Shown: piece by piece, positions 2,658 to 63,328 of the stretch | Layout: each line of letters starts with the position of its first letter | How positions within the stretch are numbered: position 1 is the first letter of the stretch | Virus record (IMG/VR): IMGVR_UViG_3300050821_002957 | Coordinates: 186,001 to 250,000 of that record | Strand: one strand, 5' to 3' | Length of the DNA stretch: 64,000 bases | The notes under the pieces: model-generated | Seen by the model: only the letters and a program-made list of their open reading frames with translations | Told to the model about the DNA's origin: nothing | Database searches by the model: none | Made by a program: the position numbers and the translations under genes

Positions 2658-2699
2658 TAGATGCATCTACTTGACAAGATCCGACGAATGTGATATCTT
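2658..2699 (+). promoter_or_regulatory. Sigma70-type promoter with TAGATGCATCTA palindrome just upstream of the -35
   Basis: Palindrome 2658-2669, TTGACA 2671, 17 bp, TGnTATCTT, ATG 6 nt later. Confidence 0.75.
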
Positions 2700-2705
2700 C
2701 CAATC

Positions 2706-3059
2706 ATGGCTTACATAGCAATGAGCGCTTGTGGACAGTGCCATCAAATTTTTTCGTACAATCCACATCTTGTCCCGTCTTTGAACGATGTGCCGTTTTG
2801 CCGTAATTGTGTCGAACGTGCAAATCCCAAACGCATCGCCAACGGTCTGGAGCCGATCAACATCCTCCCTGGCGCATACGAATCGGTCGCCGAAACTCCC
2901 GCTGAAGAGATGGAAACGGATTATCAATGCGATCAAGAGTACTACGATCCAGAAGAGCCGATGACGCCATACGACAGCGACGATGAATTTGAAGATGAAT
3001 TCAATGACGATATCGACCGGGACGATCTTGACGATTATCCACCGGCATTTCGCCCCTAA
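2706..3059 (+). CDS. Zn-finger protein with highly acidic C-terminal tail
   Basis: CGQC...CRNC; D/E-rich tail. Confidence 0.7.
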   Translation: MAYIAMSACGQCHQIFSYNPHLVPSLNDVPFCRNCVERANPKRIANGLEPINILPGAYESVAETPAEEMETDYQCDQEYYDPEEPMTPYDSDDEFEDEFNDDIDRDDLDDYPPAFRP

Positions 3060-3063
3060 AAAG

Positions 3064-3104
3064 TTGATACATCTATTGACTTCTGAACTGATCTACGGTA
3101 GACT
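3064..3104 (+). promoter_or_regulatory. Sigma70-type promoter with palindrome
   Basis: TTGATACATCTA-TTGACT-17 bp-TAGACT. Confidence 0.7.
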
Positions 3105-3132
3105 TGAAGAGTAGACAAAAGGACACCACCTT

Positions 3133-3387
3133 ATGAACGACAATCTCCCAATTCTTTACATCCCCGTCAACGGCCACAAAGTCGCAGACAAACCCGGCTG
3201 GACTAATAGCGTCGGCATTCCTTCCCAGTCGAGCGATGCGCTTTACGTCATCGCCCAGCGCAAGACAAGCCGTGGTTGGGGCTGCTCTTGCCGTGGATGG
3301 ATTCGTCATCGTCACTGCAAGCATCTTGAAGCCCTTCGCCTGCCTGCTAACGAACGTCCTTACGAAGTTCAACTGAAAGGCAACTGA
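3133..3387 (+). CDS. SWIM zinc-finger protein
   Basis: WGCSC...RHCKHL (CxC-xn-CxH). Confidence 0.7.
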   Translation: MNDNLPILYIPVNGHKVADKPGWTNSVGIPSQSSDALYVIAQRKTSRGWGCSCRGWIRHRHCKHLEALRLPANERPYEVQLKGN

Positions 3388-3718
3388 TGACAGCCGAAAA
3401 CCAAAAAAAGAAAAATTATTGTCTGGCGGCATCAAAAAAATCACGAAGAATCTGAAAATTCTAGAGGATTTGAAACAGACTCCTCTAGCGCAGGATCAAC
3501 ACAAAAGAATTGAAATAATGATCTCGGTCTTTAAGAGATGGCAGGAAATCATCACTCTAACTTTAGCGAAAATTGTTTTGACTGAGATCCTTATCGACGC
3601 CGCCACGCAAGACGCCATTGATTTCAAACAGGCAGAGGCAGCTTTGGAGGTCGAATACAATAAGGCCATCGATGAAGTGGATGCCTTTCTCGAATTTTGG
3701 ATTGAATTTTCTGTTTGA
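3387..3718 (+). CDS. Hypothetical helical protein; ATG 3387 reaches the 3419-3718 frame only by a -1 shift
   Basis: TGATG coupling at 3385-3389; A AAA AAG at 3404-3410. Confidence 0.5.
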
Positions 3719-3794
3719 GGCTGATACTCGGGCAGAGCGAGGGTTTCTTGGATAAAACACTCTATCAGCGGTGCCAGGAAACCCTCAAAAAATT

Positions 3795-3835
3795 TAGATA
3801 CATCTATTGACATCTGGTCGGGAATGCGGTATCCT
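3795..3835 (+). promoter_or_regulatory. Sigma70-type promoter with palindrome
   Basis: TAGATACATCTA-TTGACA-17 bp-TATCCT, ATG 6 nt later. Confidence 0.75.
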
Positions 3836-3841
3836 TTGAAT

Positions 3842-4138
3842 ATGAAGACACGGAAAACAGTCAACGTTGCGGAAATGCTTTTCACAGCGAACTATTTTAT
3901 GAAGCATTCCAAACCGGAGCAGGTTGGTGAGCGCCGGGGAACCGCCAGTTTGCTGGAATCGATGCTGCACGCCAGTGGCAACTACAGTGGTTTTGGCTAC
4001 ATCGAACTGACGAATGCCGGAACCAATCAGCAGAAGTTAGGTGACGAGAGCCGTGTGTTCTACTACGTTTCTCAGAACCTTCGGAATGACTACAAAGGTG
4101 TCGAAGATCGCAAAGCTCAGGAAGGATTCGTTTACTAA
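3842..4138 (+). CDS. Hypothetical protein, leaderless
   Basis: Start reassigned to ATG 3842 from promoter geometry. Confidence 0.7.
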
Positions 4139-4139
4139 C

Positions 4140-4541
4140 ATGGGACGCCGACTTGATCCTGAAGAACGAGATCGCCGAGCAGCCGAGCGAAAAGCTGCGA
4201 CCTGGGGCGGCAAGACTCGTCTGACGTACAACCCCGACGAAGAAGGCTACGGAAGTCCCGAACTGTGGCGCAGACTCTTCTCCGAACGTATGGGCCTTGA
4301 TGCTGCTCGTGCGACGGTCGGCAAGAAATCGCCTCGTGCCATTCTTGGTCTTGATGAAGTTCGCATTTACACTCAAGCTGCTTGGGATGTCTTGAAGTCG
4401 GCCTTTCGTAAGCTGGCCTTCAAATTTCACCCAGACTACAATCCTGGATCTGACACCGCCGAAGCCATGTTCAAAGAGATCCGGGGCGCTTACGAAATCC
4501 TGGAAGACGAATTCAAACGACACGGAGTTGATGCACGATGA
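4140..4541 (+). CDS. J-domain (DnaJ-like) co-chaperone
   Basis: ILGL...[17 protein letters not shown]...[11 protein letters not shown] with HPD motif. Confidence 0.85.
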
Positions 4542-5620
4542 TTTTACCGGACGATGTAAAGAAATTCGACAAGCTGTGTGCAGACTTAGTGAAGCTCATG
4601 AAGAAGATTCGTGAAACTTCACCAGAGGCCGAAATTTTCATGGAAGCCGAGGGTGGTTTAATGTTGTTCGATGGAAACAGCCGCATCGACGACGGTGAAG
4701 ATTTTAATTGGGAAGCACAACGAGGCAAATCACATTGGACGCCCGGTTTTGGAGGAGGAGCAATATGACACTTGAACAGTTCAAAGAAACTCGACATGGA
4801 AAAGCGTTGTTTGCAGTGTACACCCCAAAGGAAACTGGCATATGGGGCATCTACGGCGAGACAGACGATCCTGGTGGAAGCTGCTTCACTCCGCTGTTGG
4901 GCGTCTTCATTGGCACGATGGCCGACGCAATGGAAGTCGCTGTGGCACAGAAAAGATTTGTTTCCTGGGGCGGCGGTGGCGATTTACGAAAGTTGACGGT
5001 GCTGACGAAATGACTCCATTTTCGCTCGCAGACACACTTCTCAAAAGCTCGACTGATGCCGAACTGTACGACATCATCGACAAAGCTCGCAAAATTTTGG
5101 CCGAACGTCGAGACCAAAAGATTGCCGAAGAGACTGCGATTTTGAAACCCAAGATCAAAGCTGCATATGAGGCTGTCGCTGCGATTCAAGCTGAGTACGA
5201 TGCCGCCACGTTGTCGATTCAGAAACGAGTAATCAAGGAATGTCGCCTCGATCCGGCAATTCAGGTTCATGATGATCTCGCTGCCGAACTTTCAAATTTG
5301 GAATGGAAGTACCCACCGACCTCTGGAGGACCAATCGGATGACACCGGAACAAATCGAAGAACACGCCGAGCAAGTACAAAAACGTGATGAACACAAAGG
5401 CAAATGGCTTGTAGGGCACGGATGTCATCGTGGGGCGCTTACGAGCCGAGACAGTAGAGTCACGTATCACGATTCACTAGAAGCCTGTCGTGAATACATC
5501 CGGGAGCAAGAAGCATTTTATCTTTCCATCGGCTACATGATCTGGTTCGCCTACGCCATTGCACCGGGCAAGACAGACAAGGATCGTATTTCATTGCACC
5601 GGGGAAACTCGTACCAATAG
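4538..5620 (+). CDS. Four coupled hypothetical ORFs (4538-4768, 4765-5013, 5010-5342, 5339-5620)
   Basis: ATGA start/stop overlaps at each junction. Confidence 0.65.
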
Positions 5621-5703
5621 ACGTATCTGCTTCCTTGACAAACTCCACATCCATGTTGTAATGGTTCTGCCCTCGCTAAATAGAAACGAGGCATCCAAGA
5701 CGC

Positions 5704-5997
5704 ATGGCAAAGAATTTACCTCAAGATCAGTACCACATTGAACTTTGCACTCAATTCTGCGCTGACGTTGAAGCGCTGATTAACGAGAGCAACAAGAAAG
5801 CAGACGAAAGAGTCGCCAAGGCCGGAAAAGCTACGACACGACTCGGATACGTAGATGCAGTCCTCATTGTAGCGGAACGCCGGAAAATAGAACCGGACCT
5901 CGCAGCCGCCTACCTCAACCCAGAAATCAAACAGAAAATGCAGCAAGAGTGGGAGAACAAACACATGCTCCCAAAGTCTGCTCGATTACCGTTCTGA
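5704..5997 (+). CDS. 33: Late promoter transcription co-activator, T4 gp33-like
   Basis: YVDAVL...IEPD...LNPEIKQK...ARLPF; synteny with 59 and 32. Confidence 0.8.
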   Translation: MAKNLPQDQYHIELCTQFCADVEALINESNKKADERVAKAGKATTRLGYVDAVLIVAERRKIEPDLAAAYLNPEIKQKMQQEWENKHMLPKSARLPF

Positions 5998-5998
5998 C

Positions 5999-6277
5999 AT
6001 GACGCAGACGTATTTCACATTCGGCCATGATGGAGTGATAGAATTTCAAGGCTATCTTGACACTCTTTACGGAACGGTGACGCCCGACGAAGATGACAAA
6101 AATGTTCATCGTCTGCCGTACAACCATTCAGTGCTTAATCGTGATGTCTGGAAGACTCAGGACGAAGCGATAGCAGCATACCAAGCCTCAGTGACCAAAG
6201 ATGTTCAAAGTGTGATCCTACGTTATCGTAAAGCCTGTGAACAGTATCCTGGTTTCTTTGTGATGTGGCCTGAATGA
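5999..6277 (+). CDS. Hypothetical protein
   Basis: Coupled ORF between 33 and 59. Confidence 0.6.
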   Translation: MTQTYFTFGHDGVIEFQGYLDTLYGTVTPDEDDKNVHRLPYNHSVLNRDVWKTQDEAIAAYQASVTKDVQSVILRYRKACEQYPGFFVMWPE

Positions 6278-6903
6278 CCGGATACGATGCCTGCCGCCGT
6301 TTCATGGCGTTGAACAATCACTTCTTCCAACCGAATTATGATTTCTTTAAGTACAAAGGTGGAGTACCTCTCAAGTTTGATACTTATGATGCCAAGCGCC
6401 AAGACGAAAAGCACAGATATGATCGACTAGGCCGAAAATTTCAATCCGACGAAGACCTTGAAAATTTCATGGTCGCCAATCTTCTCGAATCCAAGAAGAG
6501 GCTGTGGGTCGGCGCACTGTTTGGTGGTGAAGCAGACAACGTTTACATTCGCTGGCAAGGTCGAACTCAGGCGATTCAGTACAATCTCACCAGTGAAGTT
6601 AGACGGCTTGTAGACCGGCTGGAGAGTTTCAATGCTCTTTTCAAAGTAGCCGACAATGAACATCCTGAAATCTTGAAAGCCTATCTTCGGGGCGACATCT
6701 CTTTAGAGAGTTTTGTAGTCCTTGACCTTTGCATTGGTTTCATTGACAACATCGATGTAAAGCTCAGTGATGATCGAAATTGGACCATTGTCAAGCATAA
6801 AGCCATTAAGTACAGACCTTTCCTCGAACGGCTAAATATCGACATCCCGGCGCTCCGAAAAGCAGTGCTGGAGTCGATCCGAGGATTGGGGGTTACAAGC
6901 TAA
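6274..6903 (+). CDS. 59: Helicase loader, T4 gp59-like
   Basis: ALNNHF...YDFFKYKG...HPEILKAYLRGDISLES...KYRPFL. Confidence 0.9.
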   Translation: MTGYDACRRFMALNNHFFQPNYDFFKYKGGVPLKFDTYDAKRQDEKHRYDRLGRKFQSDEDLENFMVANLLESKKRLWVGALFGGEADNVYIRWQGRTQAIQYNLTSEVRRLVDRLESFNALFKVADNEHPEILKAYLRGDISLESFVVLDLCIGFIDNIDVKLSDDRNWTIVKHKAIKYRPFLERLNIDIPALRKAVLESIRGLGVTS

Positions 6904-7175
6904 TGCCTGTTACAAAAGATACTCAATTGGACTACTTCATGGATGTCGTTCTTAGGAACTACTGTCGTGCTGCCGAAGAGTGCGAATTTTTATACCAAGA
7001 AGCAGAAGATTTAAGGAATTGTCTGACAATTCTTTTCCAAGAAAATTCCGATCTTCGATTTCGATTGCAAGAGGCTGGGCTTGAAGTTCCTGTCTCAAAT
7101 TTTGTCACGGCAGAAGAGGCTGCGGCAATGGACGATCAGGAAATGTTTCCAGTCGAAAATAACGATTTAGCCTAA
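6903..7175 (+). CDS. Hypothetical acidic coiled-coil protein
   Basis: TAATG coupling to gene 59. Confidence 0.6.
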   Translation: MPVTKDTQLDYFMDVVLRNYCRAAEECEFLYQEAEDLRNCLTILFQENSDLRFRLQEAGLEVPVSNFVTAEEAAAMDDQEMFPVENNDLA

Positions 7176-7185
7176 TGAATACGGG

Positions 7186-7326
7186 GCTGTCAGGCCGAAA
7201 ACTTGACAGTCCTGAAAACCGTGAGATGCTAAATATGTTGAGAGATTATGAAGGCAGCAACGCAGTGAGTTGCTTGCAGAAAGGCAGTGGATACAACGTT
7301 AAACATACGAGAGATACTACGAAAAT
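7186..7326 (+). promoter_or_regulatory. Gene 32 promoter and probable autoregulatory leader
   Basis: TTGACA 7203, TAAATA 7230, a hairpin, then an A-rich stretch with three ATAC repeats. Confidence 0.5.
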
Positions 7327-8334
7327 ATGTCGATTACAAAAAACACAGAGTCCCGTACACAGTACTTGGCCTCTCTCCGCAGCAAAGTCCAGGAGATGTC
7401 CTCTCCCAAGGGTTCCTCAAACAACACAAGACAGAATGATGATCGCTACTGGCGTCCAGAAGTAGATAAAGCTGGCACCGGAAGCGCAGTTATTCGTTTC
7501 CTTCCTCCGAAGTCTGGTAATGCTTTTCCGTTCGTCCAGCTTTGGAGCCACGGTTTCCAAAATCCCGAGAACAGCAAGTGGTTCATTGACAATTGCCCGT
7601 CCTCACTTGGTGGCCTTCCCTCTGATGTTTGCCCGGTTTGCGCCGACAACAACAGTTTGTGGAATGCAGACAAGGACAAGGAAAGTCCGCTGAAGAAGTT
7701 GGCTTCGTCTCGCAAGCGCAAGCTATCTTACATCAGCAACATTTTGGTTGTGAAAGATCCAAAACATCCTGAGAATGAAGGCAAGGTGTTCTTGTTCAAG
7801 TATGGCAAGAAAATCTTCGAGAAGATCAAGGACATGATTGATCCTCCAGCCGAATTCGCAGACATGCAGCCCATCGATCCATATGACATGGAAGAAGGCG
7901 CAAACTTCAAGCTCCGTCAGGTGAAGGTAGACAACTTCCCGAACTATGACAAGTCCAGTTTCGACGCTCCTTCGGCAGTCGGTGACGAAGACTACATCGC
8001 ATCAATCGAAGCACAGTTGATCGATCTGAATTCGTTGCTCGATCCGAAGCACTTCAAGCCATATGCAAAGTTGGCCGAACGCTTCACATTTGTAACTGGT
8101 GCAGCAGCCCCGAGCACCACATCTACAGGCGGCGACAGTGCTGTCTCTACTCCATCGGTTGAAGATGGAATGACCGATGATGAGCCGGTAGCAAAGCCAG
8201 CCGCAGCAAGGACCGCAACGTCTAAGCCTGCTGGTCGAACCGCAAAGCCGAAAGCAACTGCGGAAGTACCGGATGCAACACAAGATGACGATTACTTCGA
8301 GAAGTTGGCCGCACAGTCAGCAAACGAAGACTAA
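7327..8334 (+). CDS. 32: Single-stranded DNA-binding protein, T4 gp32-like
   Basis: DDRYWRPEVDKAGTGSAVIRFLP, HGFQ, CPVC, YGKKIFEKI, NYDKSSF, acidic tail. Confidence 0.97.
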   Translation: MSITKNTESRTQYLASLRSKVQEMSSPKGSSNNTRQNDDRYWRPEVDKAGTGSAVIRFLPPKSGNAFPFVQLWSHGFQNPENSKWFIDNCPSSLGGLPSDVCPVCADNNSLWNADKDKESPLKKLASSRKRKLSYISNILVVKDPKHPENEGKVFLFKYGKKIFEKIKDMIDPPAEFADMQPIDPYDMEEGANFKLRQVKVDNFPNYDKSSFDAPSAVGDEDYIASIEAQLIDLNSLLDPKHFKPYAKLAERFTFVTGAAAPSTTSTGGDSAVSTPSVEDGMTDDEPVAKPAAARTATSKPAGRTAKPKATAEVPDATQDDDYFEKLAAQSANED

Positions 8335-8356
8335 TCAGTAAGTTTGAAAAAGATAG

Positions 8357-8382
8357 CGGGGTCTTCGGGCCTCGCTTTTTTG
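8357..8382 (+). terminator. Intrinsic terminator with UUCG loop
   Basis: gcggggtc-ttcg-ggcctcgc followed by a T run; A run upstream suggests bidirectional use. Confidence 0.8.
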
Positions 8383-8384
8383 TT

Positions 8385-8621
8385 TTAGACAGGTACTTTT
8401 GGTTCAAGAAGTTTTTTGATTCCCCGGCGTGCCATCGTGGTCAGCTTGGGAATTTTTTTGGTTTTGAACTGGTTCTTCTTTTTCTTCTTTTTCTTCTTTT
8501 TCTTTTTCTTCTTCGGTTTTGGTGGTGTCAATCCTAGTGTCTTATAAATCGATTTCTTCTTCGGTGGCGACAGCAACGCCGAAGCATCAAACTCTTTTAG
8601 AAACTGGGTGAATGTAAGCAC
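8385..8621 (-). CDS. Poly-lysine basic protein with capsid-targeting-like N-terminus (MLTFTQFLKE)
   Basis: TAAATA 5 nt before GTG 8621; 13 consecutive Lys codons at 8475-8513. Confidence 0.65.
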   Translation of the reverse strand: MLTFTQFLKEFDASALLSPPKKKSIYKTLGLTPPKPKKKKKKKKKKKKKNQFKTKKIPKLTTMARRGIKKLLEPKVPV

Positions 8622-8656
8622 TGGAGTATTTAGTTTTTGCGTGCCTAAATAGCAAC

Positions 8657-8908
8657 ATGAACGAAGCAATTGTATACCAAGTACGCTCAGTCGATGCTTT
8701 CGGCAAACAGAACGTGGTCCATTCCTATGAAACCGAAGAGGCTGCAAAGGTCGCTATCAAAATGATGCAGAAGCGAACACGAAAGCGGTATGTTGTTCAT
8801 CCTGTCAAGAATCGGCCTGCGGAACACTGGGGCATTAACTTTCCACCCAACCATCCGAAGCATCCAGACAATCTTAAAAACCCACCAAAGAGCCGCCGTT
8901 TAAGTTGA
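8657..8908 (+). CDS. Small basic late protein
   Basis: TAAATA 8646-8651, 5 nt, ATG. Confidence 0.7.
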   Translation: MNEAIVYQVRSVDAFGKQNVVHSYETEEAAKVAIKMMQKRTRKRYVVHPVKNRPAEHWGINFPPNHPKHPDNLKNPPKSRRLS

Positions 8909-8939
8909 CAAGATTTGAACTCATGCGATCATAGTACGC

Positions 8940-9197
8940 ATGAATAACATTTTGCTGAACGATCCTGACACATTCATTCAATGGCGCAAAACCGATGAAC
9001 CCGGCGATAATCCAAAGTGGGAATCGCAGTGTGGTTATATCGAACAAACCAGCTTCGGGGATCGTCCAATATTCCAAGGATTTGTCGGCCCCAACCAAAC
9101 ACCCACTCAGACAAAGACCAGTCTAATTTCAATCAAACAAGAAGTCGAGCGGCTGTTTAAAAAGAATTATCAACTGACCTGGGCTTATCAAGATTAG
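8940..9197 (+). CDS. Hypothetical protein
   Basis: ORF downstream of TTGACA 8905. Confidence 0.6.
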   Translation: MNNILLNDPDTFIQWRKTDEPGDNPKWESQCGYIEQTSFGDRPIFQGFVGPNQTPTQTKTSLISIKQEVERLFKKNYQLTWAYQD

Positions 9198-12100
9198 GTC
9201 GGAATAAACATAGCGTTTTGATTGCGCTCATAAGATGTATCAGTGTTCTTTGCACGTAGGTCACCAGTATGAGTACTGTTATTGTTAGTGATCTTTGTGG
9301 TCTGTGGTGCAATGATCTGATGTCCGGTTCCTGATTGTCCTGACGTTCTGTTCAATTCAGAATTTACCGCTGAGACTTGTGCCAATTGAACACCAGTGCT
9401 TTCAGGAGACAATTTCGGTGTATCAAGTCTAGGAGCAGCAGTATTTGTAGCTGTGGCAACCATTGCAGGCATTGACGTTGCTGTTGGTCGATCTACAGGC
9501 TTTGGACTACGTGATAAAGCTGTCACCACATTCTTTTGATTAGCTACGTTCTTGATTGTATCGCCGTAACCTCTAGCCGTGGCATACTTCGCTCCCATGT
9601 TCTCAATGAACTTGTTTACATCTCCAGTCTTTTGATATTCGGCAAAGGCAGCGGCATACGGACCCTTTGGATTAGATAGGAGTTTTGCGTGAGCTATGAA
9701 ACCTTCTTCCATAGTCTTGTAATCGGCAAACTCTCTCTTGACTGAAAATCTTTTTTTGCCTGACCAACCCATCTTCAAAGGAGAGCCATCCAACTCTGTT
9801 GCTGTAGCTGCTTCTTTCGGTTTTGATTTTTGAAATTGAGCGAATTCAGCGGGAGTCATGTCTTCCTGGGTCGTTCTAGTCTGACTCATCGTATCGCTTT
9901 TTGATTTGGTGACTCCAAATGCATTGTTACCAATCGAATGCTTACCCCAACCAGATTCTACGGCCCATTGTGCAATTGTTACTTGAGCCGGAACACCAGT
10001 TGCTTTTTCTGCATCCATTGCCATCTGTGCGATTTCTGGTGGAACTTCGCCCTGCTTGTACTTGATGTTTTTGTTCTGTGTTCCGCCACCTGTTCCAAGA
10101 ATACCGATACCTGAACCACCAGCCGCCGTGACACCAGAAGATTGTGGCTGTGGCGTTGCAGGTGTCGGTGAGGTTGGTGAAGATGTCGGCGCAACTGTTT
10201 TCGTCTGTGTTGGCGATGTTGTCGGAGTGTGAAAGCTACGAGCAGTCTTTGCCAATTCAGGTGTAGATGAAATTGGAGTAGCAGGAGGCGGATTCAATCC
10301 TCTACGTGGCGTTACAGTATTTTGTGTCTGTTGGGTCGGAGCAGGCGCAGCACTAGGAGCCGGTGCTGAAGTAGTTGGTGCAGGCTTGGCTGTTTCTGCT
10401 GTCTTCTTACCGCCGCCAAATGGATGTAGAATTGAATTGATCTTATCAGAAATCCAATCAATGACAGATTTGATAGCATCGGTTACTGACTGCAAGGCAT
10501 CTGTCAAAATTTTGGTGTTTTGTGGGCCAATAATGTTTTCGACCATCTTCTTGATCGAATCGAAAACACTGGAGAAGGCCGTACTGATACTTGCAAACGC
10601 TTTGGTGATGGTCTCCATACCAGGGATCTTCATGATCTCTTGACCAAAGTTTTCAAATGATTTTGTGAATGCCTCGATTACCTTATCCAATGCATCTTTG
10701 ATGGTATCGAGATTGAACATCGTCAAGAACCATTTGCCAAGCGCACTGAACATTCCCAGTACACCATCTTTCAGTTCTTCTATTCCTTTGTCGAATGTCT
10801 TAGGATCAGACAAATCGGACAGACCATCGATGAACTTTGACAGTCCTTCAAAAAAGTCGCCGATGATCTCAATCATCTTGCCAAGACGTTTTGCGACAAA
10901 CTCCAGGATCGGTCCCAGAACTTTGAAGATTGGTTTGGATGCCACATAGAGAGCACTCAAAATGGAACCAATTGCTTTGAAAATGCTGGCAAACGATTTT
11001 GCGCTGGTCTTTCCAAGTGTCTTTCCAATTTCTGTTTTGACACCTGCCAATCCGAGCACGAAATCAATAATTCCGAACAGACCTTCGACCACGCCGCCTA
11101 AACCACCAGCGACCCGATCCATCATCGTCAATTTCTTTTTGTCTCCAAGATACTTTTCTGCGTGCATGAATGCCGGGATGAAATCGAAGATAGCAGTGAT
11201 TGCCATAATGACTTCGCCGACAACTGGAATGAAATCTAGGAATTCAGCCATTCGACCTGCGCCACCCAAGAGTTTTGCGCCCTTGAGCATCTCGCCGCCT
11301 TCGGCCAGGAGCTTAGTACCACCCTTTGCACCTGCTTCAGCACCTTCCCCGACTGCCTTTCCAACCTCTCCCAGACCCTTTGCGCCGTCCTCTACGGCTT
11401 CGATGCCGCTTGCCGCACCCTCAACACCCCTTCCAGCCCCAGAAGCGCCCTTGCCTCGTCCAAACCAGCGCTTGAACATGCCTCCTTCTTCAGCTTCAGC
11501 CCCACCTTTAGCAGTTTTGTTGCCGAGACCCAGCCACTTTCCAATTTTGCCGCCAAACAACCGTCCGATTCCGGCTTCAATGCCAGACATGAGACCGCCG
11601 AGCAAACCGCCCTTTTTCCCACCTGATTTTTTGGCGACATCAGCAAGCAATCCACCAGCATCGCCATCGGTTGTTTCCCGACGCTTTGCGTTCGCATCCA
11701 ATTCGGATTGATCTAGTTGCTTTGCAAGCAATTTGTTGATTTCTTTTAGTTCAATCAACTGCTCTTCGTCTAATTTTGCGACTCTCGAAAGCGGACCTTC
11801 TTTGTCGCTGGTAAGAATGCTCAATTTTTTGTCTTGATCTTTTTGGACACCTTCCATGAGCTTGAGCAAACCTGCGGTATTACTTTGGCTCGCCAGTTTT
11901 TCAGGATGTAATGTCGGTTCATCCAAATCCATACGCCCGTTTTGAACAAGCTCTGGAGCCGCCGCCTTTTTCAATTGTGGTGGTGCTTCAAATTTTTCTA
12001 CGTTTGGCATCGCATGAACAGCAGCAGTCATCATTGCTTTGACTGGACTGTTGTACGGATTTTTCATGCGCTCCGCTTCTTGCTTTTCCATATGGGCTAA

Positions 12101-13486
12101 AGCAGTCGGTTTCGGATGAGATTCTTCACCAAAAATTTCCGGCCAATCTGGTGTGCCTGAAGGCTTTTTTAAACTATCTTCATGCTTCTTTTGTAATAGA
12201 CCTTTACCATGCTTTCTGATGGACTCTAACCATGCATCACGTTCATCTAACTCTTGCTGCTTCTTTGGTGTGCTCTTCTGATAACCTGCCCAATCAGGAA
12301 TTGCATTACCCAAGTGATCCCGAACCAATTGCTGAGGAGCCGAGGACACAGATGGTCCGTGAGCTACTGCGGTCGGAGACGTTGATCCTATTGTTTGAAG
12401 TGGTGACTGAGATACTGGTGTTGACTGTCCTTGAGAACCAGCGGCACGTTCCCATAAAGGTTGATAATCAGGGCGCAACAATTCAGCACGCAAATTCTGA
12501 TGCTGTTCTGTGCTGATCTTACCCTTAGCGTGCAAATTTTCAAGAGCGGAGTGGCGAACATCTTCGTCTTTGATTTTTCCAAGATGTTCCTTTACGGTAT
12601 CATGATCATGTTTGACATCAGCATCGTCAAGCATCGGTTCATCCGGGCGTGGTAATACTTTTTTGATGTCACCGACTTTGAATTGATTAGCTTTTGTTTT
12701 CTGACGTGCTTCTCGACGATCACGCATTTTTTCGAGAATATACTTGGTAGCTAAACCGACAATCGGAGAGTGACCAGCCAAACCAGAGATGACACTGACT
12801 GCATCAATATTTTGCTTCTGTAAGAACGAACCCATTTTACCGAGCAAACCTGTACGCTGACGTGTCTCTTGCTCCAATGCCTTTTGTAGATTAAGAGTGG
12901 CATTAGTGAGAATCTTATTTTCGGTGCCGACAGTGCTGAATCGAACACTCTCTTGAATATCAGAGAGCTTTTTCTTTGCTCCTTCCAGTTCGTCCTTGCT
13001 GTACGTATGGTACTCGGACGCCATGCTATCAATATTTTCAGCGTGGCGTTTTCCTGCATCGGAATACACATTACCACGTCGTTGCTTAATCAGCTTTTCT
13101 TTGTCTTTCTTTTTTTGAAGCGCAGTAAGTTGATCGACGACTTTTTTGGTAGATGCTTCGACCTGACGAATCTTCTCGAAATCGTCATCATTGTTGTTGC
13201 CACCAGTAGACTTTCTTGGAGACCTTGGACGACTGCCACCGCCACCTGAAGACGAGTTACGAGGAGCAGATCCACCGCCGCCACCTGAAGACACGTTGCC
13301 ATCCTTTAACATGTCTGCTAGGTCTTCGGCTGCGTTTTCAGTGGCCTGTTGAAATACCTGATGGATTTTGGTCGTCAGCTTCTTGGACAGATCATCTAAG
13401 AGATCTTCTTTGTCCACAAGCGTCAGATTTGAAACATCAATCTGATTCAGGTCTACCCCGTTTTTTGTTGTCTTCTTGGATGGCAT
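9194..13486 (-). CDS. Baseplate hub / tail length determinant (gp29-like) with C-terminal GH73 (FlgJ-like) peptidoglycan hydrolase
   Basis: 1430 aa; Gly-rich and amphipathic repeats; AQWAVESGWG..NNAFG..YAT motifs; C-terminal APxT..NNNST; follows 26 and 51. Confidence 0.8.
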   Translation of the reverse strand: MPSKKTTKNGVDLNQIDVSNLTLVDKEDLLDDLSKKLTTKIHQVFQQATENAAEDLADMLKDGNVSSGGGGGSAPRNSSSGGGGSRPRSPRKSTGGNNNDDDFEKIRQVEASTKKVVDQLTALQKKKDKEKLIKQRRGNVYSDAGKRHAENIDSMASEYHTYSKDELEGAKKKLSDIQESVRFSTVGTENKILTNATLNLQKALEQETRQRTGLLGKMGSFLQKQNIDAVSVISGLAGHSPIVGLATKYILEKMRDRREARQKTKANQFKVGDIKKVLPRPDEPMLDDADVKHDHDTVKEHLGKIKDEDVRHSALENLHAKGKISTEQHQNLRAELLRPDYQPLWERAAGSQGQSTPVSQSPLQTIGSTSPTAVAHGPSVSSAPQQLVRDHLGNAIPDWAGYQKSTPKKQQELDERDAWLESIRKHGKGLLQKKHEDSLKKPSGTPDWPEIFGEESHPKPTALAHMEKQEAERMKNPYNSPVKAMMTAAVHAMPNVEKFEAPPQLKKAAAPELVQNGRMDLDEPTLHPEKLASQSNTAGLLKLMEGVQKDQDKKLSILTSDKEGPLSRVAKLDEEQLIELKEINKLLAKQLDQSELDANAKRRETTDGDAGGLLADVAKKSGGKKGGLLGGLMSGIEAGIGRLFGGKIGKWLGLGNKTAKGGAEAEEGGMFKRWFGRGKGASGAGRGVEGAASGIEAVEDGAKGLGEVGKAVGEGAEAGAKGGTKLLAEGGEMLKGAKLLGGAGRMAEFLDFIPVVGEVIMAITAIFDFIPAFMHAEKYLGDKKKLTMMDRVAGGLGGVVEGLFGIIDFVLGLAGVKTEIGKTLGKTSAKSFASIFKAIGSILSALYVASKPIFKVLGPILEFVAKRLGKMIEIIGDFFEGLSKFIDGLSDLSDPKTFDKGIEELKDGVLGMFSALGKWFLTMFNLDTIKDALDKVIEAFTKSFENFGQEIMKIPGMETITKAFASISTAFSSVFDSIKKMVENIIGPQNTKILTDALQSVTDAIKSVIDWISDKINSILHPFGGGKKTAETAKPAPTTSAPAPSAAPAPTQQTQNTVTPRRGLNPPPATPISSTPELAKTARSFHTPTTSPTQTKTVAPTSSPTSPTPATPQPQSSGVTAAGGSGIGILGTGGGTQNKNIKYKQGEVPPEIAQMAMDAEKATGVPAQVTIAQWAVESGWGKHSIGNNAFGVTKSKSDTMSQTRTTQEDMTPAEFAQFQKSKPKEAATATELDGSPLKMGWSGKKRFSVKREFADYKTMEEGFIAHAKLLSNPKGPYAAAFAEYQKTGDVNKFIENMGAKYATARGYGDTIKNVANQKNVVTALSRSPKPVDRPTATSMPAMVATATNTAAPRLDTPKLSPESTGVQLAQVSAVNSELNRTSGQSGTGHQIIAPQTTKITNNNSTHTGDLRAKNTDTSYERNQNAMFIPT

Positions 13487-13489
13487 TCA

Positions 13490-13798
13490 TTATCCGTTTA
13501 GTTGCTGTGGTCCATCAACTTTAGTAGTCGGATCGGGTAAAAGTTCATGCTTTGCTTGGTTACCCTTTTGGACGGCGTTGATGCGTTGCTGTTGAATGGT
13601 TGGTTCTGTCAAGTTCATTCTAAAGTTCAAGAATGTCTTTGCCGAACTGCGAAACCACGTCCAGGTCCATTGAGGGATCTCTTTGAACGAGGGCAGCATT
13701 TCAGGCATTGATCCGATGGTTGCCGACGCCAAAAGACCCAACATTAACTGGTTGTCTTTCGCCCAGGTTAGAATTTGTTCGATTGATGGCATGATCAT
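13490..13798 (-). CDS. Late protein with a hydrophobic segment; possible membrane or holin-like protein
   Basis: TAAATA 5 nt before ATG 13798. Confidence 0.5.
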   Translation of the reverse strand: MIMPSIEQILTWAKDNQLMLGLLASATIGSMPEMLPSFKEIPQWTWTWFRSSAKTFLNFRMNLTEPTIQQQRINAVQKGNQAKHELLPDPTTKVDGPQQLNG

Positions 13799-13841
13799 GG
13801 GACTATTTATGTCCAAGCCAATCAATAGATACATCAATAGT

Positions 13842-14003
13842 TTAGCGTTTTCTATTGTTCTCGTCGGCGATCCGTTTGTTTTCCGAATCGATGTAGTCTT
13901 TGATGAGAACTAGATAGGCATCACGTTCCCACGGTATCATTCCCTCGACCTCAGTCAACGAATACTTATGGTGAAACATGAGACTGAAGTTCACCATGAA
14001 CAT
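13842..14003 (-). CDS. 51: Baseplate hub assembly protein, short gp51-like form (53 aa), absent from the ORF track
   Basis: NFSLMFHHKYSLTEVEGMIPWERDAY matches the T4-like gp51 pattern. Confidence 0.85.
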   Translation of the reverse strand: MFMVNFSLMFHHKYSLTEVEGMIPWERDAYLVLIKDYIDSENKRIADENNRKR

Positions 14004-14029
14004 ATTCGGGAGTGAATTGTGGCTGAGGG

Positions 14030-14842
14030 CTATCCGAAAAAACTTGGAAGTCCCTCGATGTGGAGAGGTTCTTCATATCCACACTTTGAGCAATGGAACT
14101 GAGTATCATGTGCCAGCTTCGGAATTGATTCAAAAAACTTCTGAAGTTTGACAAACTGTGCCTGAGTTAGCTTCTCAACCCATTCTTGGATATCTTTGGT
14201 TGTAAAGTTGTTATAGACTGACTCTTCGTCAAAGACAGATTCGATACAAAGAGCAATAGTAATCAGAGCGTCGTTCACATTGTCCTTTGGAGTTACAACG
14301 GCCCCAGTCGCACGTAATAACTGTCTTGCCATCTTAAAATTTGGATAGCGCATGTTAACGCCAAGTGTTTCGGTCAAGAAAATCTGCTTCTGATGATCTT
14401 CGTTGAATTGTATCCTTACGTCATCCAGATTGATCTTAACTTTTACTACATGGTCACAATCGGCAATGATCGGTGCATCAGGATCATCATTGGACTTTTT
14501 GAAAATTCGACGTTTTTCAGCTTCTTCCGGCGTCAATGTCACTTTGTTGTGGCAACGATAACTCAATTCGACATTGGAATCTACCGAGCGTGAGCGCAAT
14601 TGTAAGAAGATGAATTCCAAATCGAAATTTGCCAGTTCTTCTACTTTGATTGGCGAAAGAGCACATGACGTGACTACCTGGACGATAGCATCGAGCATCT
14701 GCCTTTCATCTTCACCTTCCAATGCAATGAGCAACAGTTTCTCCTCTTTTACAAGGAACGGACGAAACTGGATTCCCTGGCCGGTGGACGGAATGATGAT
14801 TTCAAAATGGGGAACGATCTTTTCGAGATTGGGTAATGGCAT
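14030..14842 (-). CDS. 26: Baseplate hub subunit, gp26-like
   Basis: IPSTG..FRPFLVKEEKLLL..FDLEFIFLQLRSRSV..CSKC..EGLPSFF. Confidence 0.9.
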   Translation of the reverse strand: MPLPNLEKIVPHFEIIIPSTGQGIQFRPFLVKEEKLLLIALEGEDERQMLDAIVQVVTSCALSPIKVEELANFDLEFIFLQLRSRSVDSNVELSYRCHNKVTLTPEEAEKRRIFKKSNDDPDAPIIADCDHVVKVKINLDDVRIQFNEDHQKQIFLTETLGVNMRYPNFKMARQLLRATGAVVTPKDNVNDALITIALCIESVFDEESVYNNFTTKDIQEWVEKLTQAQFVKLQKFFESIPKLAHDTQFHCSKCGYEEPLHIEGLPSFFG

Positions 14843-14874
14843 ACTGATCGTATGTAGTCACCACAAAAACAACG

Positions 14875-48883: not shown

Positions 48884-49377
48884 GTAGTCAAGAGGTTCAA
48901 GACAAATAAACGAAAGGCGGCGAGATTGCAAAGCATGAGGAGGACATAGGCGCTCACTTGAGTATGCTGGTTTCAAATGATCGGCAACGAGAGCGACAAG
49001 AGCATTTGATGCAAGCCGTATGATGCTGGTGCGGCCCAAGCTGAAATCTAATCCGTGTTGCTCGGGTCATATGGCGAGACACGTCGGAAAGAATCCCAGC
49101 GTCATACACTCCAGCGACCAATGGTGTATGATTGGTTGATTGACGGATGATCGACGGCGAAGAGCGGACAAGTGCTGAGAGACGCCCTGAATCAGTAGCC
49201 GTAGATGTCACGAGGATTGCACAGCTTTTCATCCGGCTTGTGCGACTGCGACGAAAGAACGAGAGACGATATGCGCTAACTTGAATAACATACCCTGCTC
49301 GGGTTTAAGAGCCTTAAAATTTACTCCTTTCCTGAGGCGCTTTGCAGAGAAACACTGCGGAGCGCCTTATGTGTTTT
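48884..49377 (+). ncRNA. Putative large structured noncoding RNA of about 490 nt
   Basis: No ORF of 60 aa or more on +; many helices and pseudoknot-type pairings; 15-bp terminal hairpin 49333-49369. Confidence 0.6.
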
Positions 49378-49399
49378 GGGCCTGCTATATATTTGAAAC

Positions 49400-60712: not shown

Positions 60713-60748
60713 GCAACTATATATACGTTCAAGCTCTTGGAAACAGGA

Positions 60749-61033
60749 TCAATTCTCTTGGACTCGTATTCCTATTTCTTCGGCTTCTTGAGCACAAACC
60801 TCAAGCACCACTGCCGGATGCATCCACTGCATTAGCATCGCAGTGGTTCGGCATGTGTCGCAATTTCTAATGTGCTCTTCGATGCCCACCATCTTGATAG
60901 AATTTGTTACGACGATTTCCACTGCATCAAACGTATTGTCCTGAGCACTAGTAAATGGAAATTGCCGGAAGGGATCTTCATTAAGGAGATCCAGAATCTG
61001 TTCTTCCGTTGCATGAAAACTTAATTTGGCCAT
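60749..61033 (-). CDS. zf-HC2-like protein
   Basis: HATEEQI..IEEHIRNCDTC. Confidence 0.5.
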   Translation of the reverse strand: MAKLSFHATEEQILDLLNEDPFRQFPFTSAQDNTFDAVEIVVTNSIKMVGIEEHIRNCDTCRTTAMLMQWMHPAVVLEVCAQEAEEIGIRVQEN

Positions 61034-61297
61034 GTTCAAAGTTCTGTGGCGACCACTTTCAAAATTGAACGTAAGCGCCACTCGTCGTCGCCCTCGCACG
61101 AAATCAGGCGCAGTGAGAAATATGGAAATCCCATTTGGTTCTTCTCTTCGATCACTTCAAACTCCATACGATCAGGCCGCAGATGCTCTTCCCACGCTTT
61201 GACAATGTGAAGGCGCAACTGCGGAGCAAGATGGCTGAACGCACTATCAGGATTGTCGTATTGGCCGGGAGTGAAAACAATCACTCCCGGCTTCATT

Positions 61298-61939
61298 TCA
61301 GTTGGCTGATACGCCGTTGGTTTCTTCTTCGCCATCTTCGTCTTCTTCCGGCTCGTCGGCGAGCGTTTGCATGAAGGCTTCTTTGGCGGCGGCATCCATT
61401 CCAATCAATTGTAAAAGAGGCGTAGCAGAGACTAACGTGACGCCGTAGTAAGTGCTGTCGGGATTACGAGGTGGACGATCAGGAAGTTGTGAACCATAGC
61501 GGCCTTTCCCAGGTGCTTCTTGAAAGCCACGATAGAACTCGAATGTCTCATCATCGAGATTCACGATGTAGGCGTACTCACAGAACAAACTATCGAGTAG
61601 GAAGCCGTGAGAATCGATCATGACACCAAGCTCTTCGTCGAGCCACGGAGCGAGACTGCCCTGAGCTTCACGCAACAGGCAATACCAATCCTCAAGTTTC
61701 TGTTTGCTCACTTCGAGGTTGGCCCACTTCTCGTTTGCGGCGATTTGTTCTGCGGTCGGCGGTTCATCGCTGTCGATCAAGACGATGGCTCGTGCGACCT
61801 TTTTCATCTGTTCGATTGACGATCCGATAATGTCGTCAATCAAGTCTGATCCAAGCCCGTCTGGATAGGAGTCGAAATGGTTGTATGTAACCTTGTCGAG
61901 TCCGTCAATTCTGAATCCGAATGCGCCTCGTGTTCCCAT
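61298..61939 (-). CDS. Conserved phage protein (YxHxD(G/S)YPxGxG family)
   Basis: MGTRG..YNHFDSYPDGLG..EYAY; related to 62526-63293. Confidence 0.7.
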   Translation of the reverse strand: MGTRGAFGFRIDGLDKVTYNHFDSYPDGLGSDLIDDIIGSSIEQMKKVARAIVLIDSDEPPTAEQIAANEKWANLEVSKQKLEDWYCLLREAQGSLAPWLDEELGVMIDSHGFLLDSLFCEYAYIVNLDDETFEFYRGFQEAPGKGRYGSQLPDRPPRNPDSTYYGVTLVSATPLLQLIGMDAAAKEAFMQTLADEPEEDEDGEEETNGVSAN

Positions 61940-62438
61940 TGTTGGGTCCTTTCGTACTGAATGCTTCTTTCAAAAATGCTGTTTGAATCTTGAACGCAAG
62001 TTGTCGTGGTTCTGTGAATATTGTAACACCCTGCGTCTCTTCGTTGCTGAATGTAAAGTCCACGGCGCTCTGCTGAATGTCCTCAGAAACGCCAAAAACG
62101 GCCAAGAAGCCGTCGATGGACACGATGCTATGGAAAGTGACCTCTTTGATCACGACGCCCGTCTCTTCATACGTCTCACGAATTCCGGCCTCTTGCCATG
62201 ACTCATGACGTTCGATGTAACCACCGGGCATACAAAACTCTCCCCGGCCCGGATCGATGTTGCGTTGAAGGCCAAGGATGCCGATGTCGCCGCCATTTTC
62301 ATCGACGATGGGCACAGCAATTATGATGATGGGGAATGGATTCAACCAGACATTCCTACCGCAGTTCTCACAATGAAAAGGATAGGCGTTCGATGCGTAC
62401 TTGGTTCCGCAGTAATGACAATGATCGTTTGCTTTCAC
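61905..62438 (-). CDS. Nudix hydrolase with N-terminal Zn ribbon
   Basis: CHYCG..CENCG; Nudix box GGYIERHESWQEAGIRETYEETG. Confidence 0.92.
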   Translation of the reverse strand: MKANDHCHYCGTKYASNAYPFHCENCGRNVWLNPFPIIIIAVPIVDENGGDIGILGLQRNIDPGRGEFCMPGGYIERHESWQEAGIRETYEETGVVIKEVTFHSIVSIDGFLAVFGVSEDIQQSAVDFTFSNEETQGVTIFTEPRQLAFKIQTAFLKEAFSTKGPNNGNTRRIRIQN

Positions 62439-62454
62439 ATTCCGAAGTGTACCA

Positions 62455-62488
62455 CAAAAGAAAGGCCAGCCGAAACAACTGGCTGGCC
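62455..62488 (-). terminator. Intrinsic terminator
   Basis: ggccagcc / ggctggcc hairpin with T run on minus. Confidence 0.65.
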
Positions 62489-62525
62489 GTAGAGAGGAGA
62501 AGGAGGAAATTTAGGCGTTGACGAC

Positions 62526-63293
62526 CTAAACAGGCTCGACCGGATAATTCGGCAGACCGAGACCGGCGATATGCTTGCATGAGCCATGAACACGATGGGC
62601 CATGCAAGAACACTGCCAGCGATGATTGGTCTTGTGCTGACCGATGGTGTACTCGCTCGTGCTGTCCGTGAATGATTTGACCGTGAAGCGATTGGTGTAG
62701 AAGGCAGTGTCCTCCAAGCGAGTCGAGGTACGGGGTATCAGTACCTTCGGCAACACAGCGGGAAGCGGTTGGCGCTTCGGAGCACCAGGAATATGAACTT
62801 CCTCGCACGAGATGTCATTGCCGTCATCGTCGATGCTGACCTTGAAGCAAAAGACCATCGGCAGACCATTGACCATTTTGCCGGTGTCCACGACGTAGCG
62901 ATACTCGATGTCGCAGGGATCTTTCATCATGATGCCACATGAAATGAAATCGAGGCGTTCCTTTTTCGGAACAGAAGTGAACTCACGCTTTTCGTTCGGG
63001 TCCTTTGGATTGTGCGAATGCTCGTGCAGCTTGCCTGCGGCATCTTTGAATTTGTAATCGACGGCGAACATCTCACCGAGGAACACGACGTATCGGGCAG
63101 CGAGAAAAGCATCGTCATCCAGACGATTGTCCTTGAGCTTCTTGCAACGGCGAAGGAACTTGTACAGATCGACGCCAGCGCCCTTGGGATAGCCGTCGCT
63201 GTGACGATAAACGATGGCGCTAAGATAGGGCTTGTTCGTTACTGGATCGATGTATGTGCTGTCGATGAAGTGTGTCGTTGACCGTGTGCTCAT
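62526..63293 (-). CDS. YxHxDGYP-family protein fused to a SWIM zinc finger, leaderless
   Basis: MSTRS..YRHSDGYPKGAG; WQCSC..SCKHI. Confidence 0.7.
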   Translation of the reverse strand: MSTRSTTHFIDSTYIDPVTNKPYLSAIVYRHSDGYPKGAGVDLYKFLRRCKKLKDNRLDDDAFLAARYVVFLGEMFAVDYKFKDAAGKLHEHSHNPKDPNEKREFTSVPKKERLDFISCGIMMKDPCDIEYRYVVDTGKMVNGLPMVFCFKVSIDDDGNDISCEEVHIPGAPKRQPLPAVLPKVLIPRTSTRLEDTAFYTNRFTVKSFTDSTSEYTIGQHKTNHRWQCSCMAHRVHGSCKHIAGLGLPNYPVEPV

Positions 63294-63299
63294 GTATCT

Positions 63300-63328
63300 A
63301 AGATAGCAAAGATACATCTAAAAGTCAA
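63300..63328 (-). promoter_or_regulatory. Sigma70-type promoter with palindrome inside the spacer
   Basis: TTGACT-17-TATCTT; AAGATACATCTA at 63309-63320. Confidence 0.7.

Follow-up and report, generated by a model that had tools for sequence, protein, structure and literature searches.

Timed transcription in phages has its textbook example in the T4-like phages, which rely on ADP-ribosylation, AsiA/MotA and gp55/gp33 for it, and, from the literature searched, we know of no global palindromic operator described in their early promoters. The locus analyzed here raises the question of what a 12-bp palindrome, TAGATRYATCTA, does beside or inside one promoter after another of such a phage. The window, by which we mean the whole stretch of 64,000 nucleotides that was analyzed, covers bases 186,001–250,000 of one 405,631-bp IMG/VR virus contig (IMGVR_UViG_3300050821_002957) from a soil metagenome, and an earlier note on this DNA had proposed that the palindrome (hereafter the box) defines a promoter regulon governed by a dimeric regulator. 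Our analysis upholds this proposal on sequence grounds and suggests that the box is the operator of a dimeric, probably phage-encoded factor, for which a ribbon-helix-helix (RHH) protein is the candidate, and that this factor would be an early-made repressor that shuts off or throttles the early gene set, a reading to which we attach a rough probability of 45%. Judging from its gene content, the contig (46% G+C; CheckV completeness of 100%) is a huge T4-like myovirus of ~405 kb, with a tail sheath, a family-B DNA polymerase (PolB), gp32 and the late motif CTAAATA among its T4-like markers. Its lifestyle looks lytic, and a tyrosine integrase was not detected in the genome.

That the palindrome is associated with promoters is confirmed, and more strongly than first stated. 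The box, whose core is AGAT-RY-ATCT, occurs in exact form three times in the window (at 2658, 3795, and 22361), when 0.01 copies are expected per 64 kb, and none of 100 shuffles of the window reaches three exact copies; at up to two mismatches, the window holds 14 sites against 4.1 expected, and all 11 box positions listed in the earlier note are found among them. Over the 405,631 bp of the genome, there are 17 exact copies, 16 of which sit in complete promoter contexts, the 17th (405618) being truncated by the contig end, with a flank that repeats that of the copy at 1447. Across the 1,296 TTGAC sites of the genome, the number of mismatches to the box in the 12 nt upstream is bimodal, and 27 of these sites follow a box with no more than two mismatches, each of the 27 having a TAnnnT at 16–18 nt. 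Likewise, 31 of the 37 box copies with at most one mismatch are intergenic, in a genome that is ~84% coding according to rough gene calls (~628 open reading frames [ORFs] delineated by a codon-usage ORF picker). A lack of enrichment at promoters genome-wide had been named beforehand as the outcome that would speak against a regulon, and these counts are its opposite.

Genome-wide, we found ~50 box promoters of the sigma70 type, with a TTGACA-type -35 and a TAnnnT -10 at 16–18 nt, in which the box takes one of three positions. In the upstream class (26 genome promoters), the box lies 0–1 nt from the -35, with its center at about -41.5, and the consensus, aaaaaAa.TAGATACATCTA-TTGACAT-N-TGgTAnnnT-N6-ATGA, reads successively as an A-tract, the box, a perfect -35 (TTGACW), a 17-nt spacer, a TG-extended -10 and a start codon; about five more promoters carry the box 3–4 nt further upstream than this main class. 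In the spacer class (14 genome promoters), the first base of the box falls 5–11 nt past that of the -35, in a spacer that most often measures 18 nt. Finally, a third class of two promoters (genome 65940 and 357629) has the box over the -10 and +1. Two boxes are combined in a few promoters, namely at 48836 and 48859 in the window, at genome 357604 and 357629 (upstream plus -10), and at genome 149365 (upstream plus spacer half-sites). The third position, the genome-wide scale of the system, and the leaderless design described below had all escaped the earlier note.

The symmetry of the box holds across these positions. Position matrices were built from 42 upstream-class promoters (26 from the genome and 16 from five relatives) and from 20 spacer-class promoters: G3 is kept in 40/42 of the former and C10 in 42/42, when the corresponding counts for the spacer class are 20/20 and 19/20. 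In both classes, G3, A4, and T5 are mirrored by A8, T9, and C10, and the central dinucleotide of the spacer class is neutral as to orientation (GC 8, AC 7, GT 5). Conservation is thereby two-fold symmetric and independent of the flanking promoter elements, as it is in dimeric operators, and since both halves are equally conserved in different registers, a separate dimeric DNA-binding protein is a likelier reader of the box than RNA polymerase, which fits the dimeric regulator that the dyad had been taken to imply. The possibility that the box works at the RNA level, by forming a hairpin or a terminator, was considered and rejected: its folding energy is 0, so that no RNA hairpin is possible; in the upstream and spacer positions, the box moreover lies upstream of the predicted transcript. 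As for hairpins of -12 kcal/mol or below in the 50 nt upstream, they are found in 4 of the 26 cassettes versus 9% of random 50-mers, which is the background level.

The same architecture recurs in related phages, in keeping with a genuine promoter regulon. An IMG/VR scan with the box followed by TTGACW returned 72 loci, and the full architecture was confined to a handful of related contigs: five of them (42–51% G+C) show both positional classes and the leaderless ATG, and this architecture is shared by four additional contigs of different sample origin, among them one of 375 kb, for a total of nine related contigs. Orthologous promoters, in front of genes whose proteins are 43–61% identical, have diverged in their spacers and flanks but retain the box, -35, TG, -10, and ATG. 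The position of the box differs for one orthologous gene, being upstream in the relative G001 and within the spacer in the window's genome, which is a single weak case. A lineage-wide shift of register is seen in another relative (L144; JGI 3300045700 Ga0486075_000008, 374,748 bp), in which the box stands 1 nt from the -35 at 6 of 8 promoters (positions 1978–16623), when the distance is mostly 0 nt in the window's genome. The named T4-like relatives that were searched have no box promoters. Synechococcus phage S-SRM01 yielded 10 near-copies of the box versus 1 for the control, which we rejected as homologous sites: they lack any TTGAC or promoter context and are apparently intragenic. Among ~185,000 bacterial species, represented by one genome each, the composite pattern was found in two contigs only, and we regard both as chance occurrences, the box being no commoner there than its reversed control; and each of the 401 Pseudomonadota genomes sampled has at most one box followed by TTGAC. 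The distribution of the box system thus appears specific to a clade of uncultivated phages, and no host regulon from which it could have been copied was found in the bacteria searched.

On this basis, we propose that the palindrome acts as an operator in ~50 promoters that would be read by the sigma70-type RNA polymerase of the host. A sigma70 region 4 was not detected in the phage genome, which points to the host housekeeping holoenzyme as the reader of the -35/-10 promoters. The box would be bound by a dimer that recognizes its sequence specifically, a protein other than RNA polymerase and probably encoded by the phage. In the spacer and -10 positions, such a bound protein would have to block the polymerase, and we infer that it represses from the upstream position as well. 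A single early-made protein could in this manner shut off or throttle, in the course of infection, a whole set of strong early promoters, most of them leaderless, the candidate for this role being a clade-conserved RHH protein encoded at genome 5637–5999.

This candidate, a 120-aa ORF (locus L073:5637-5996:+) located outside the window, was retrieved by a six-frame search with the RHH_1 family and belongs to the same plus-strand block as box promoters that lie ~4 kb upstream of it. It harbors the signature KILLRLPSTL...NRSEFIRRAVRF, followed by a 70-residue helical C-terminal part, and its alignment with the RHH domain of NikR (strand plus helix B) has an E value of 0.48, which is not significant. 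When residues 1–60 were modeled as a homodimer, the score was 0.64 against 0.01 for the best control; among proteins of solved structure, 20 of 30 homodimers and 1 of 23 single chains scored as high. The model runs had a contact agreement of at least 91% and a partner pLDDT of at least 78, and the contacts 10:14, 12:12, and 43:43 are of the antiparallel beta-ribbon type. The model supports a likeness to RHH dimers, which is a different matter from DNA binding. Sixty-two metagenomic homologues, 57–88% identical, were found on contigs of up to 375 kb, and JGI labels them CopG/Arc/MetJ regulators. Among these homologues, little or no variation is seen in K10, L12, and R14 on the DNA-facing strand or in the NRSEFxRR segment, in line with the constancy of the operator throughout the clade, and 7 of the 7 examined contigs that carry the RHH protein also have box promoters. 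The candidate has no match in named phages, and a word-based scan of IMG/VR for it returned just two contigs that were already known.

RHH repressors with short symmetric operators include P22 Arc (TAGA subsites in the spacer of Pant), Mnt, MetJ (8-bp met-boxes), and CopG. The system described here resembles them by its short palindrome located in or beside the -35/-10, by the TAGA...TCTA arms of this palindrome, and by a candidate protein with an RHH signature and a predicted beta-ribbon homodimer; the likeness of the arms to the TAGA subsites of Arc is one that we take as a lead only. However, the 70-residue helical C-terminal part of the candidate is absent from Arc, Mnt, and CopG, and the Arc operator is TAGA-N5-TCTA, when the arrangement here is TAGA-N4-TCTA. 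Another protein of the phage, encoded at 32956 in the window and taken to have a helix-turn-helix (HTH), had been suggested as one candidate regulator before. This 59-aa ORF (32956–33135, plus strand) matches HTH_7 (homeodomain/resolvase-type) below threshold (E 2e-4; 21.8 bits for a cut-off of 23.8), has no homologue in the fragments of the relatives, and revealed no sign of dimerization, and the RHH protein appears to be the better candidate of the two.

A further feature of the box promoters concerns the start of translation. In 39 of 50, a start codon found 5–8 nt past the -10, and mostly at 6 nt, opens an ORF of at least 40 aa, this codon being ATG in all but one. When gene-start ATGs were scored for a preceding TGnTAnnnT without regard to the -35 or the box, the distance was 6 nt in 39 cases, 7 nt in 12, and any other value in ~1 case each, and 38 box-less sigma70-type promoters exhibit the leaderless geometry too. 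Since an ATG located 6–7 nt past the -10 coincides with the predicted transcription start, the mRNAs of box promoters are predicted from geometry to be mostly leaderless. Late mRNAs look leaderless as well: 45 genes, among which the structural block (e.g., tail sheath) is well represented, have CTAAATA in the 60 nt that precede them, and in 15 of these 45 genes the motif starts exactly 12 nt before the ATG, when in the T4-like phage Aeh1 it begins at -12 from the transcription start (PMC1524935). The window offers an example of this motif at 5678–5684 and a variant, ATAAATA, near 13810 on the minus strand. That uncultivated 370–405-kb T4-like soil phages, with late promoters of the gp55-type CTAAATA kind, run mostly leaderless both early and late and control ~50 early promoters through one operator and one clade-specific RHH protein, in the form of a global early shut-off or switch, is a compound claim that we advance tentatively and hold to be somewhat doubtful.

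The gene for the gp32-like single-strand DNA-binding protein (window 7327–8334, plus strand; Pfam E 2.5e-44) has, among leaderless neighbors, a leader of more than 60 nt behind TTGACA and CTAAATA (upstream region 7204–7237), which recalls the translational autoregulation of T4 gene 32. When the contigs of two soil metatranscriptome runs were compared with window positions 2400–8399, only 6873–8335, mainly gp32, was covered, the longest of these contigs (7265–8335, from run X3) spanning the gp32 gene.

Whether a factor bound to the box would repress from every position, or change sign with position, has to be weighed against systems in which a dyad at the -35 activates. Class II activators centered at -41.5 include CRP/FNR/NtcA and lambda cI at PRM, and the targets of this class usually lack a good -35; Mor/C of phage Mu can be set beside them. 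The upstream class of box promoters resembles these, the phage Mu C activator among them (PMC4461284), by a dyad that abuts or overlaps the -35 near -41.5 under an A-tract. In the model of the earlier note, one dimeric factor would activate the class that abuts the -35 and repress the class with a box in the spacer; acting also over the -10, such a factor could carry the infection from immediate-early to delayed-early or middle expression. In favor of such a switch, the offset of the box is fixed at -12/-13 in the 26 genome and 16 relatives' promoters, the A-tract at -55 to -49 falls where the alpha C-terminal domain sits in a class II complex, and the offsets of the spacer boxes vary (+5 to +11), as they would for a simple steric block. 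The two gene sets also differ, the first genes of the spacer class being larger (median of 165 vs. 112 aa) and including Ku and an HD-domain protein, and the MotA C-terminal domain and AsiA were not detected in the genome (both searches lacking a positive control), so that another early-to-middle device would be needed. The T4 system of MotA box and AsiA at middle promoters (PMC2988021) is comparable in that a phage-specific motif is added to host-type -10 promoters of a T4-like phage to time expression, but the MotA box is asymmetric, centered at -30, and replaces the -35, whereas the box is palindromic and the -35 is retained. The target promoters of class II activators and of Mu C have a weak or absent -35: here, the -35 is TTGACA/T throughout the upstream class, and the box also occupies positions that can only hinder the polymerase. 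Their -35 being perfect, their spacer 17 nt long, and their -10 extended, the upstream promoters should need no activator, and such near-consensus cores should fire unaided, as the early promoters of a lytic phage must. A switch would further deliver opposite signals to the promoters that combine an upstream box with one in the spacer or over the -10, when two boxes suit cooperative repression; and the orthologue that changes class, weak as this single case is, and the 1-nt shift at most promoters of the L144 lineage favor repression too. These arguments, which are not decisive, make repression at all positions more likely than a switch between activation and repression, and we regard the latter as unlikely.

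The nearest known system appears to be that of the PeSL (promoter-early stem-loop) cassettes of the T4-like phages RB49/phi1, PST, and nt-1, which flank orphan genes, mediate modular shuffling, and have a dyad whose place varies between the sequence that precedes the -35, the spacer, and the -35 or -10 itself (Arbiol et al. 2010, PMC2839356; Comeau et al. 2014, PMC4122927). The box promoters could be described either as PeSL-like early cassettes or as a dispersed phage operator regulon, with a true palindrome and systematic leaderless starts as their own features. They share with PeSLs the setting in a T4-like phage, dozens of repeated strong sigma70-type early promoters with AT-rich upstream sequence in front of small orphan genes, a dyad element in several alternative positions, and ~60–100 bp of conservation that can seed recombination. 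It could accordingly be held that each ~60-nt unit is a portable early promoter and a homology patch for the shuffling of orphan genes, the palindrome being perhaps the site of a recombination protein and no operator at all; the cassettes do head small unknown ORFs, another contig of the source sample matches this locus at the promoter cassettes only, and the assembly ends inside a cassette, with paralogous arrays at both contig ends. However, the PeSL dyad is a G+C-rich stem-loop terminator, when that of the box promoters is a loop-less A+T-rich palindrome of fixed length that cannot fold, with upstream hairpins at background level, and PeSLs end in a Shine–Dalgarno site, when the ATG stands 6–7 nt past the -10 in these cassettes. 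That the 12 box positions are kept when spacers and flanks have diverged argues for position-specific selection rather than copy-and-paste homogenization, and the same 12-mer is conserved in a different setting inside spacers. A recombination role to the exclusion of an operator is on these grounds quite improbable; the two roles are not mutually exclusive, and recombination may coexist with regulation. The signal could also be one that the phage copies from its host, either a site for a global regulator or a contact of the alpha C-terminal domain or sigma region 4 of RNA polymerase, given that early promoters have to be active ahead of all phage protein synthesis, that neither HTH_3 (Xre-type) nor sigma70 region 4 was detected in the phage genome, and that the A/T-rich stretch upstream of the -35 occupies the position of an UP element. 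Yet, if the box were a contact of the polymerase, copies of equal symmetry would not be present inside the spacer and over the -10 as well, and both the bacterial genomes and the named T4-like relatives described above argue against a borrowed host signal, the absence from the bacteria searched being only partial evidence; we consider this explanation very improbable.

Other phages are known in which a single repressor serves dispersed operators, such as P1 with C1, or the mycobacteriophages L5 and Bxb1 with the operators and "stoperators" of gp71 and gp69, respectively. A repressor at the box would resemble these by a short site present in tens of copies, overlapping promoters, and by the control of many operons by one phage protein. 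They differ in that their sites are asymmetric and serve lysogeny in temperate phages, when the present site is a true palindrome in a T4-like phage.

Several points weigh against an early repressor and against the candidate proposed for it. The near-rigid placement of the upstream box at the -35 (center at -41.5), together with the A-tract, is the classic geometry of a class II activator. Besides, the central dinucleotide of the upstream class is skewed (AC 25, GT 12), which may reflect a shared ancestry of the cassettes or an effect of orientation. The match of the RHH candidate to Pfam RHH_1 is below threshold (16.6 bits for a cut-off of 20.5), and its AlphaFold monomer is poor (pLDDT of 52, with helices at 17–30 and 36–49). 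The co-occurrence of the RHH protein with the box is not independent evidence, because the contigs form one clade, and the link between the two is circumstantial. The phage may also encode other DNA-binding proteins among its ~628 ORFs. Lastly, the metatranscriptome contigs do not cover the box-promoter starts at 2.6–3.9 kb, an observation that is neutral as to regulation; such contigs could in any case not show starts.

If the RHH/operator circuit were real, it would provide a global means of shutting off or switching early expression, for which we know of no described precedent among T4-like phages. It would also be compact and testable, with one 12-bp site, ~50 promoters, and one or two candidate proteins. 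When co-directional genes are counted up to the next strand switch, 287 of the ~628 ORFs are placed under box promoters, so that the circuit may govern up to ~45% of the genes of a 405-kb genome, a figure that is an upper bound in which terminators are ignored. Besides, the ATG found at the predicted start of both early and late transcripts suggests that the phage relies on leaderless translation, which would be relevant to the takeover of host translation by huge phages that encode many tRNAs and a transfer-messenger RNA (tmRNA) and may help to narrow down the host. In practical terms, the cassette offers a ready-made module for strong, regulated, leaderless expression, as well as a marker with which members of the clade could be sought in metagenomes.

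Within the window, the box promoters, the genes that follow them, and the two weaker box copies are distributed as follows, the leaderless starts being predicted ones.
2658–2708, plus strand: upstream-class promoter, box 2658–2669 (TAGATGCATCTA), 1 nt, -35 2671–2676 (TTGACA), -10 2694–2699 (TATCTT), leaderless ATG 2706.
2706–3059, plus strand: 117-aa Cys-rich ORF, no Pfam family.
3064–3135, plus strand: upstream-class promoter, box 3064–3075 (TTGATACATCTA) abutting -35 3076–3081 (TTGACT), -10 3099–3104 (TAGACT).
ATG 3133, plus strand: leadered 84-aa ORF with an AAGGA-type ribosome site in front.
3795–3844, plus strand: upstream-class promoter, box 3795–3806 abutting -35 3807–3812 (TTGACA), -10 3830–3835 (TATCCT), leaderless ATG 3842.
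From 3842, plus strand: run of ~11 genes, including the J-domain gene 4041–4541.
5618–5629, plus strand: weak box copy (TAGACGTATCTG, two mismatches), 5 nt upstream of TTGACA 5635–5640, poor -10 (TAATGG).
13826–13837, minus strand: one-mismatch box copy (TTGATGTATCTA) by a degenerate TTGATT, no sigma70 -10, adjoining a late-type start (ATAAATA-N5-ATG).
22323–22427, both strands: divergent promoter pair with one shared box, 22361–22372.
Minus side of this pair, minus strand: -35 22360–22355 abutting the box, -10 22337–22332, leaderless ATG 22325.
21906–22325, minus strand: 139-aa zinc-ribbon-like ORF, no Pfam family.
Plus side of this pair, plus strand: -35 22379–22384 (TTGACA), 6 nt from the box, -10 22401–22406.
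22425–22883, plus strand: leadered 152-aa ORF, followed by dephospho-CoA kinase CoaE at 22880–23488 (E 1.4e-40).
29905–29945, plus strand: spacer-class promoter, -35 29905–29910 (TTGACA), degenerate box 29911–29922 (AAGTTACATCTA), 18-nt spacer, -10 29929–29934 (TAGGCT).
ATG 29943, plus strand: 92-aa ORF, no Pfam family.
30415–30466, plus strand: upstream-class promoter, box 30415–30426 abutting -35 30427–30432 (TTGACT), -10 30450–30455 (TAAGAT), ATG 30464, 8 nt past the -10.
30464–31105, plus strand: DUF7007 protein, at the head of ~17 co-directional genes, among them the 59-aa HTH-like ORF 32956–33135.
48836–48877, plus strand: double-box promoter, box 48836–48847 (TTGATACATCTG) abutting -35 48848–48853 (TTGACA), box 48859–48870 (TAGATGCATCTG) in the 18-nt spacer, -10 48872–48877 (TAATCT).
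48884–49378, plus strand: ORF-free stretch of ~490 nt that ends in a G+C-rich hairpin and T-run (~49337–49378).
63291–63328, minus strand: spacer-class promoter, -35 63328–63323 (TTGACT), box 63320–63309 (TAGATGTATCTT), 17-nt spacer, -10 63305–63300 (TATCTT), leaderless ATG 63293.
63293 to 62526, minus strand: 255-aa ORF, with a NUDIX protein among the genes after it.

These coordinates refine the assignments of the earlier note. Six boxes had been placed within 1 nt of a TTGAC, which holds for those at 2658 (1 nt), 3064, 3795, 30415, and 48836 (abutting), and fails on the plus strand for 22361: as this box abuts a TTGACA on the minus strand only, the TTGACA of the plus strand being 6 nt away, it is best described as a site shared by two divergent promoters. 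The boxes at 48859, 63309 (minus strand), and 29911 do lie, as had been claimed, inside the spacer of a TTGACW/TAnnnT promoter. The two weaker copies are present in the sequence, but neither makes a convincing member of the regulon: that at 5618 is probably not one, since ~4 sites with at most two mismatches are expected per window by chance, and that at 13826 is ambiguous. The DUF7007 and J-domain labels could be confirmed, when the SWIM-finger label given to two of the controlled genes could not: a six-frame search of the whole genome yielded no match to Pfam PF04434 at E ≤ 0.05, and no Pfam family could be assigned to the ORFs at 2706, 21909, and 29943. As for the RNA of 490 nt announced behind the double-box promoter, the promoter and a terminator-like hairpin are there, and the ATG that follows the -10 is directly followed by TAG; however, the ORF-free stretch (48884–49378) has no Rfam match at E ≤ 1 and its fold is unremarkable (z-score of -1.25). 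It is possibly a putative noncoding RNA, and we do not endorse a structured one. An HNH-like ORF (49692–50444) lies downstream of it.

The first genes of box promoters are mostly small ORFs without a Pfam family. Among the genes of box-controlled runs, we observed a ceramidase-family membrane protein (33132–33749, plus strand; E 6.7e-11) and the NUDIX hydrolase (61905–62438, minus strand; E 4.2e-11). Outside the window, a Ku70/80-like protein (genome 60665–61582, plus strand; L076:665-1582:+; E 1.2e-18) is encoded behind a spacer-class promoter and adjoins an upstream-class promoter at 61652, and the HD-domain protein is also headed by a spacer-class promoter. A box promoter cassette is cut by the end of the contig, the final 128 nt of which are 92% identical to genome 1333–1460, and paralogous DUF6011 genes and gene arrays are found at both contig ends (genome 1–1460 and 403440–405631); a probable explanation is that the genome is circularly permuted and that its repeated cassettes interrupted the assembly.

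With regard to the phage itself, a nucleotide search against named phages gave no match. Its PolB is nearest to those of cyanophages (41% identity to that of S-SRM01), its tail sheath is nearest to those of phages of Variovorax, Stenotrophomonas, Xanthomonas, and Methylophilales, and it encodes a class II ribonucleotide reductase. The host is probably a proteobacterium, as a candidate assignment. The genome carries ~44 tRNA genes, with clusters at 3–10 kb, 106–140 kb, and 290–297 kb, and a permuted tmRNA of the two-piece type (genome 183223–183442, plus strand; L082:3223-3442) with the tag peptide ANAPAFAFAAAA, and this set of tmRNA and tRNAs may be a clue to the host; over the window, tRNA-Cys was the only Rfam family matched. 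On the minus strand of the window, a 1,430-aa protein (9194–13486) has a C-terminal glucosaminidase (cell-wall hydrolase) domain and shares its block with a tail-tube-like protein (14875–15657); it is probably a virion-associated lysin or a tail component. Elsewhere in the genome, an 862-aa protein (109907–112495, minus strand; L078:9907-12495:-) combines the shoulder domain of the major vault protein (E 6.9e-22) with a vault repeat, which is unusual for a phage.

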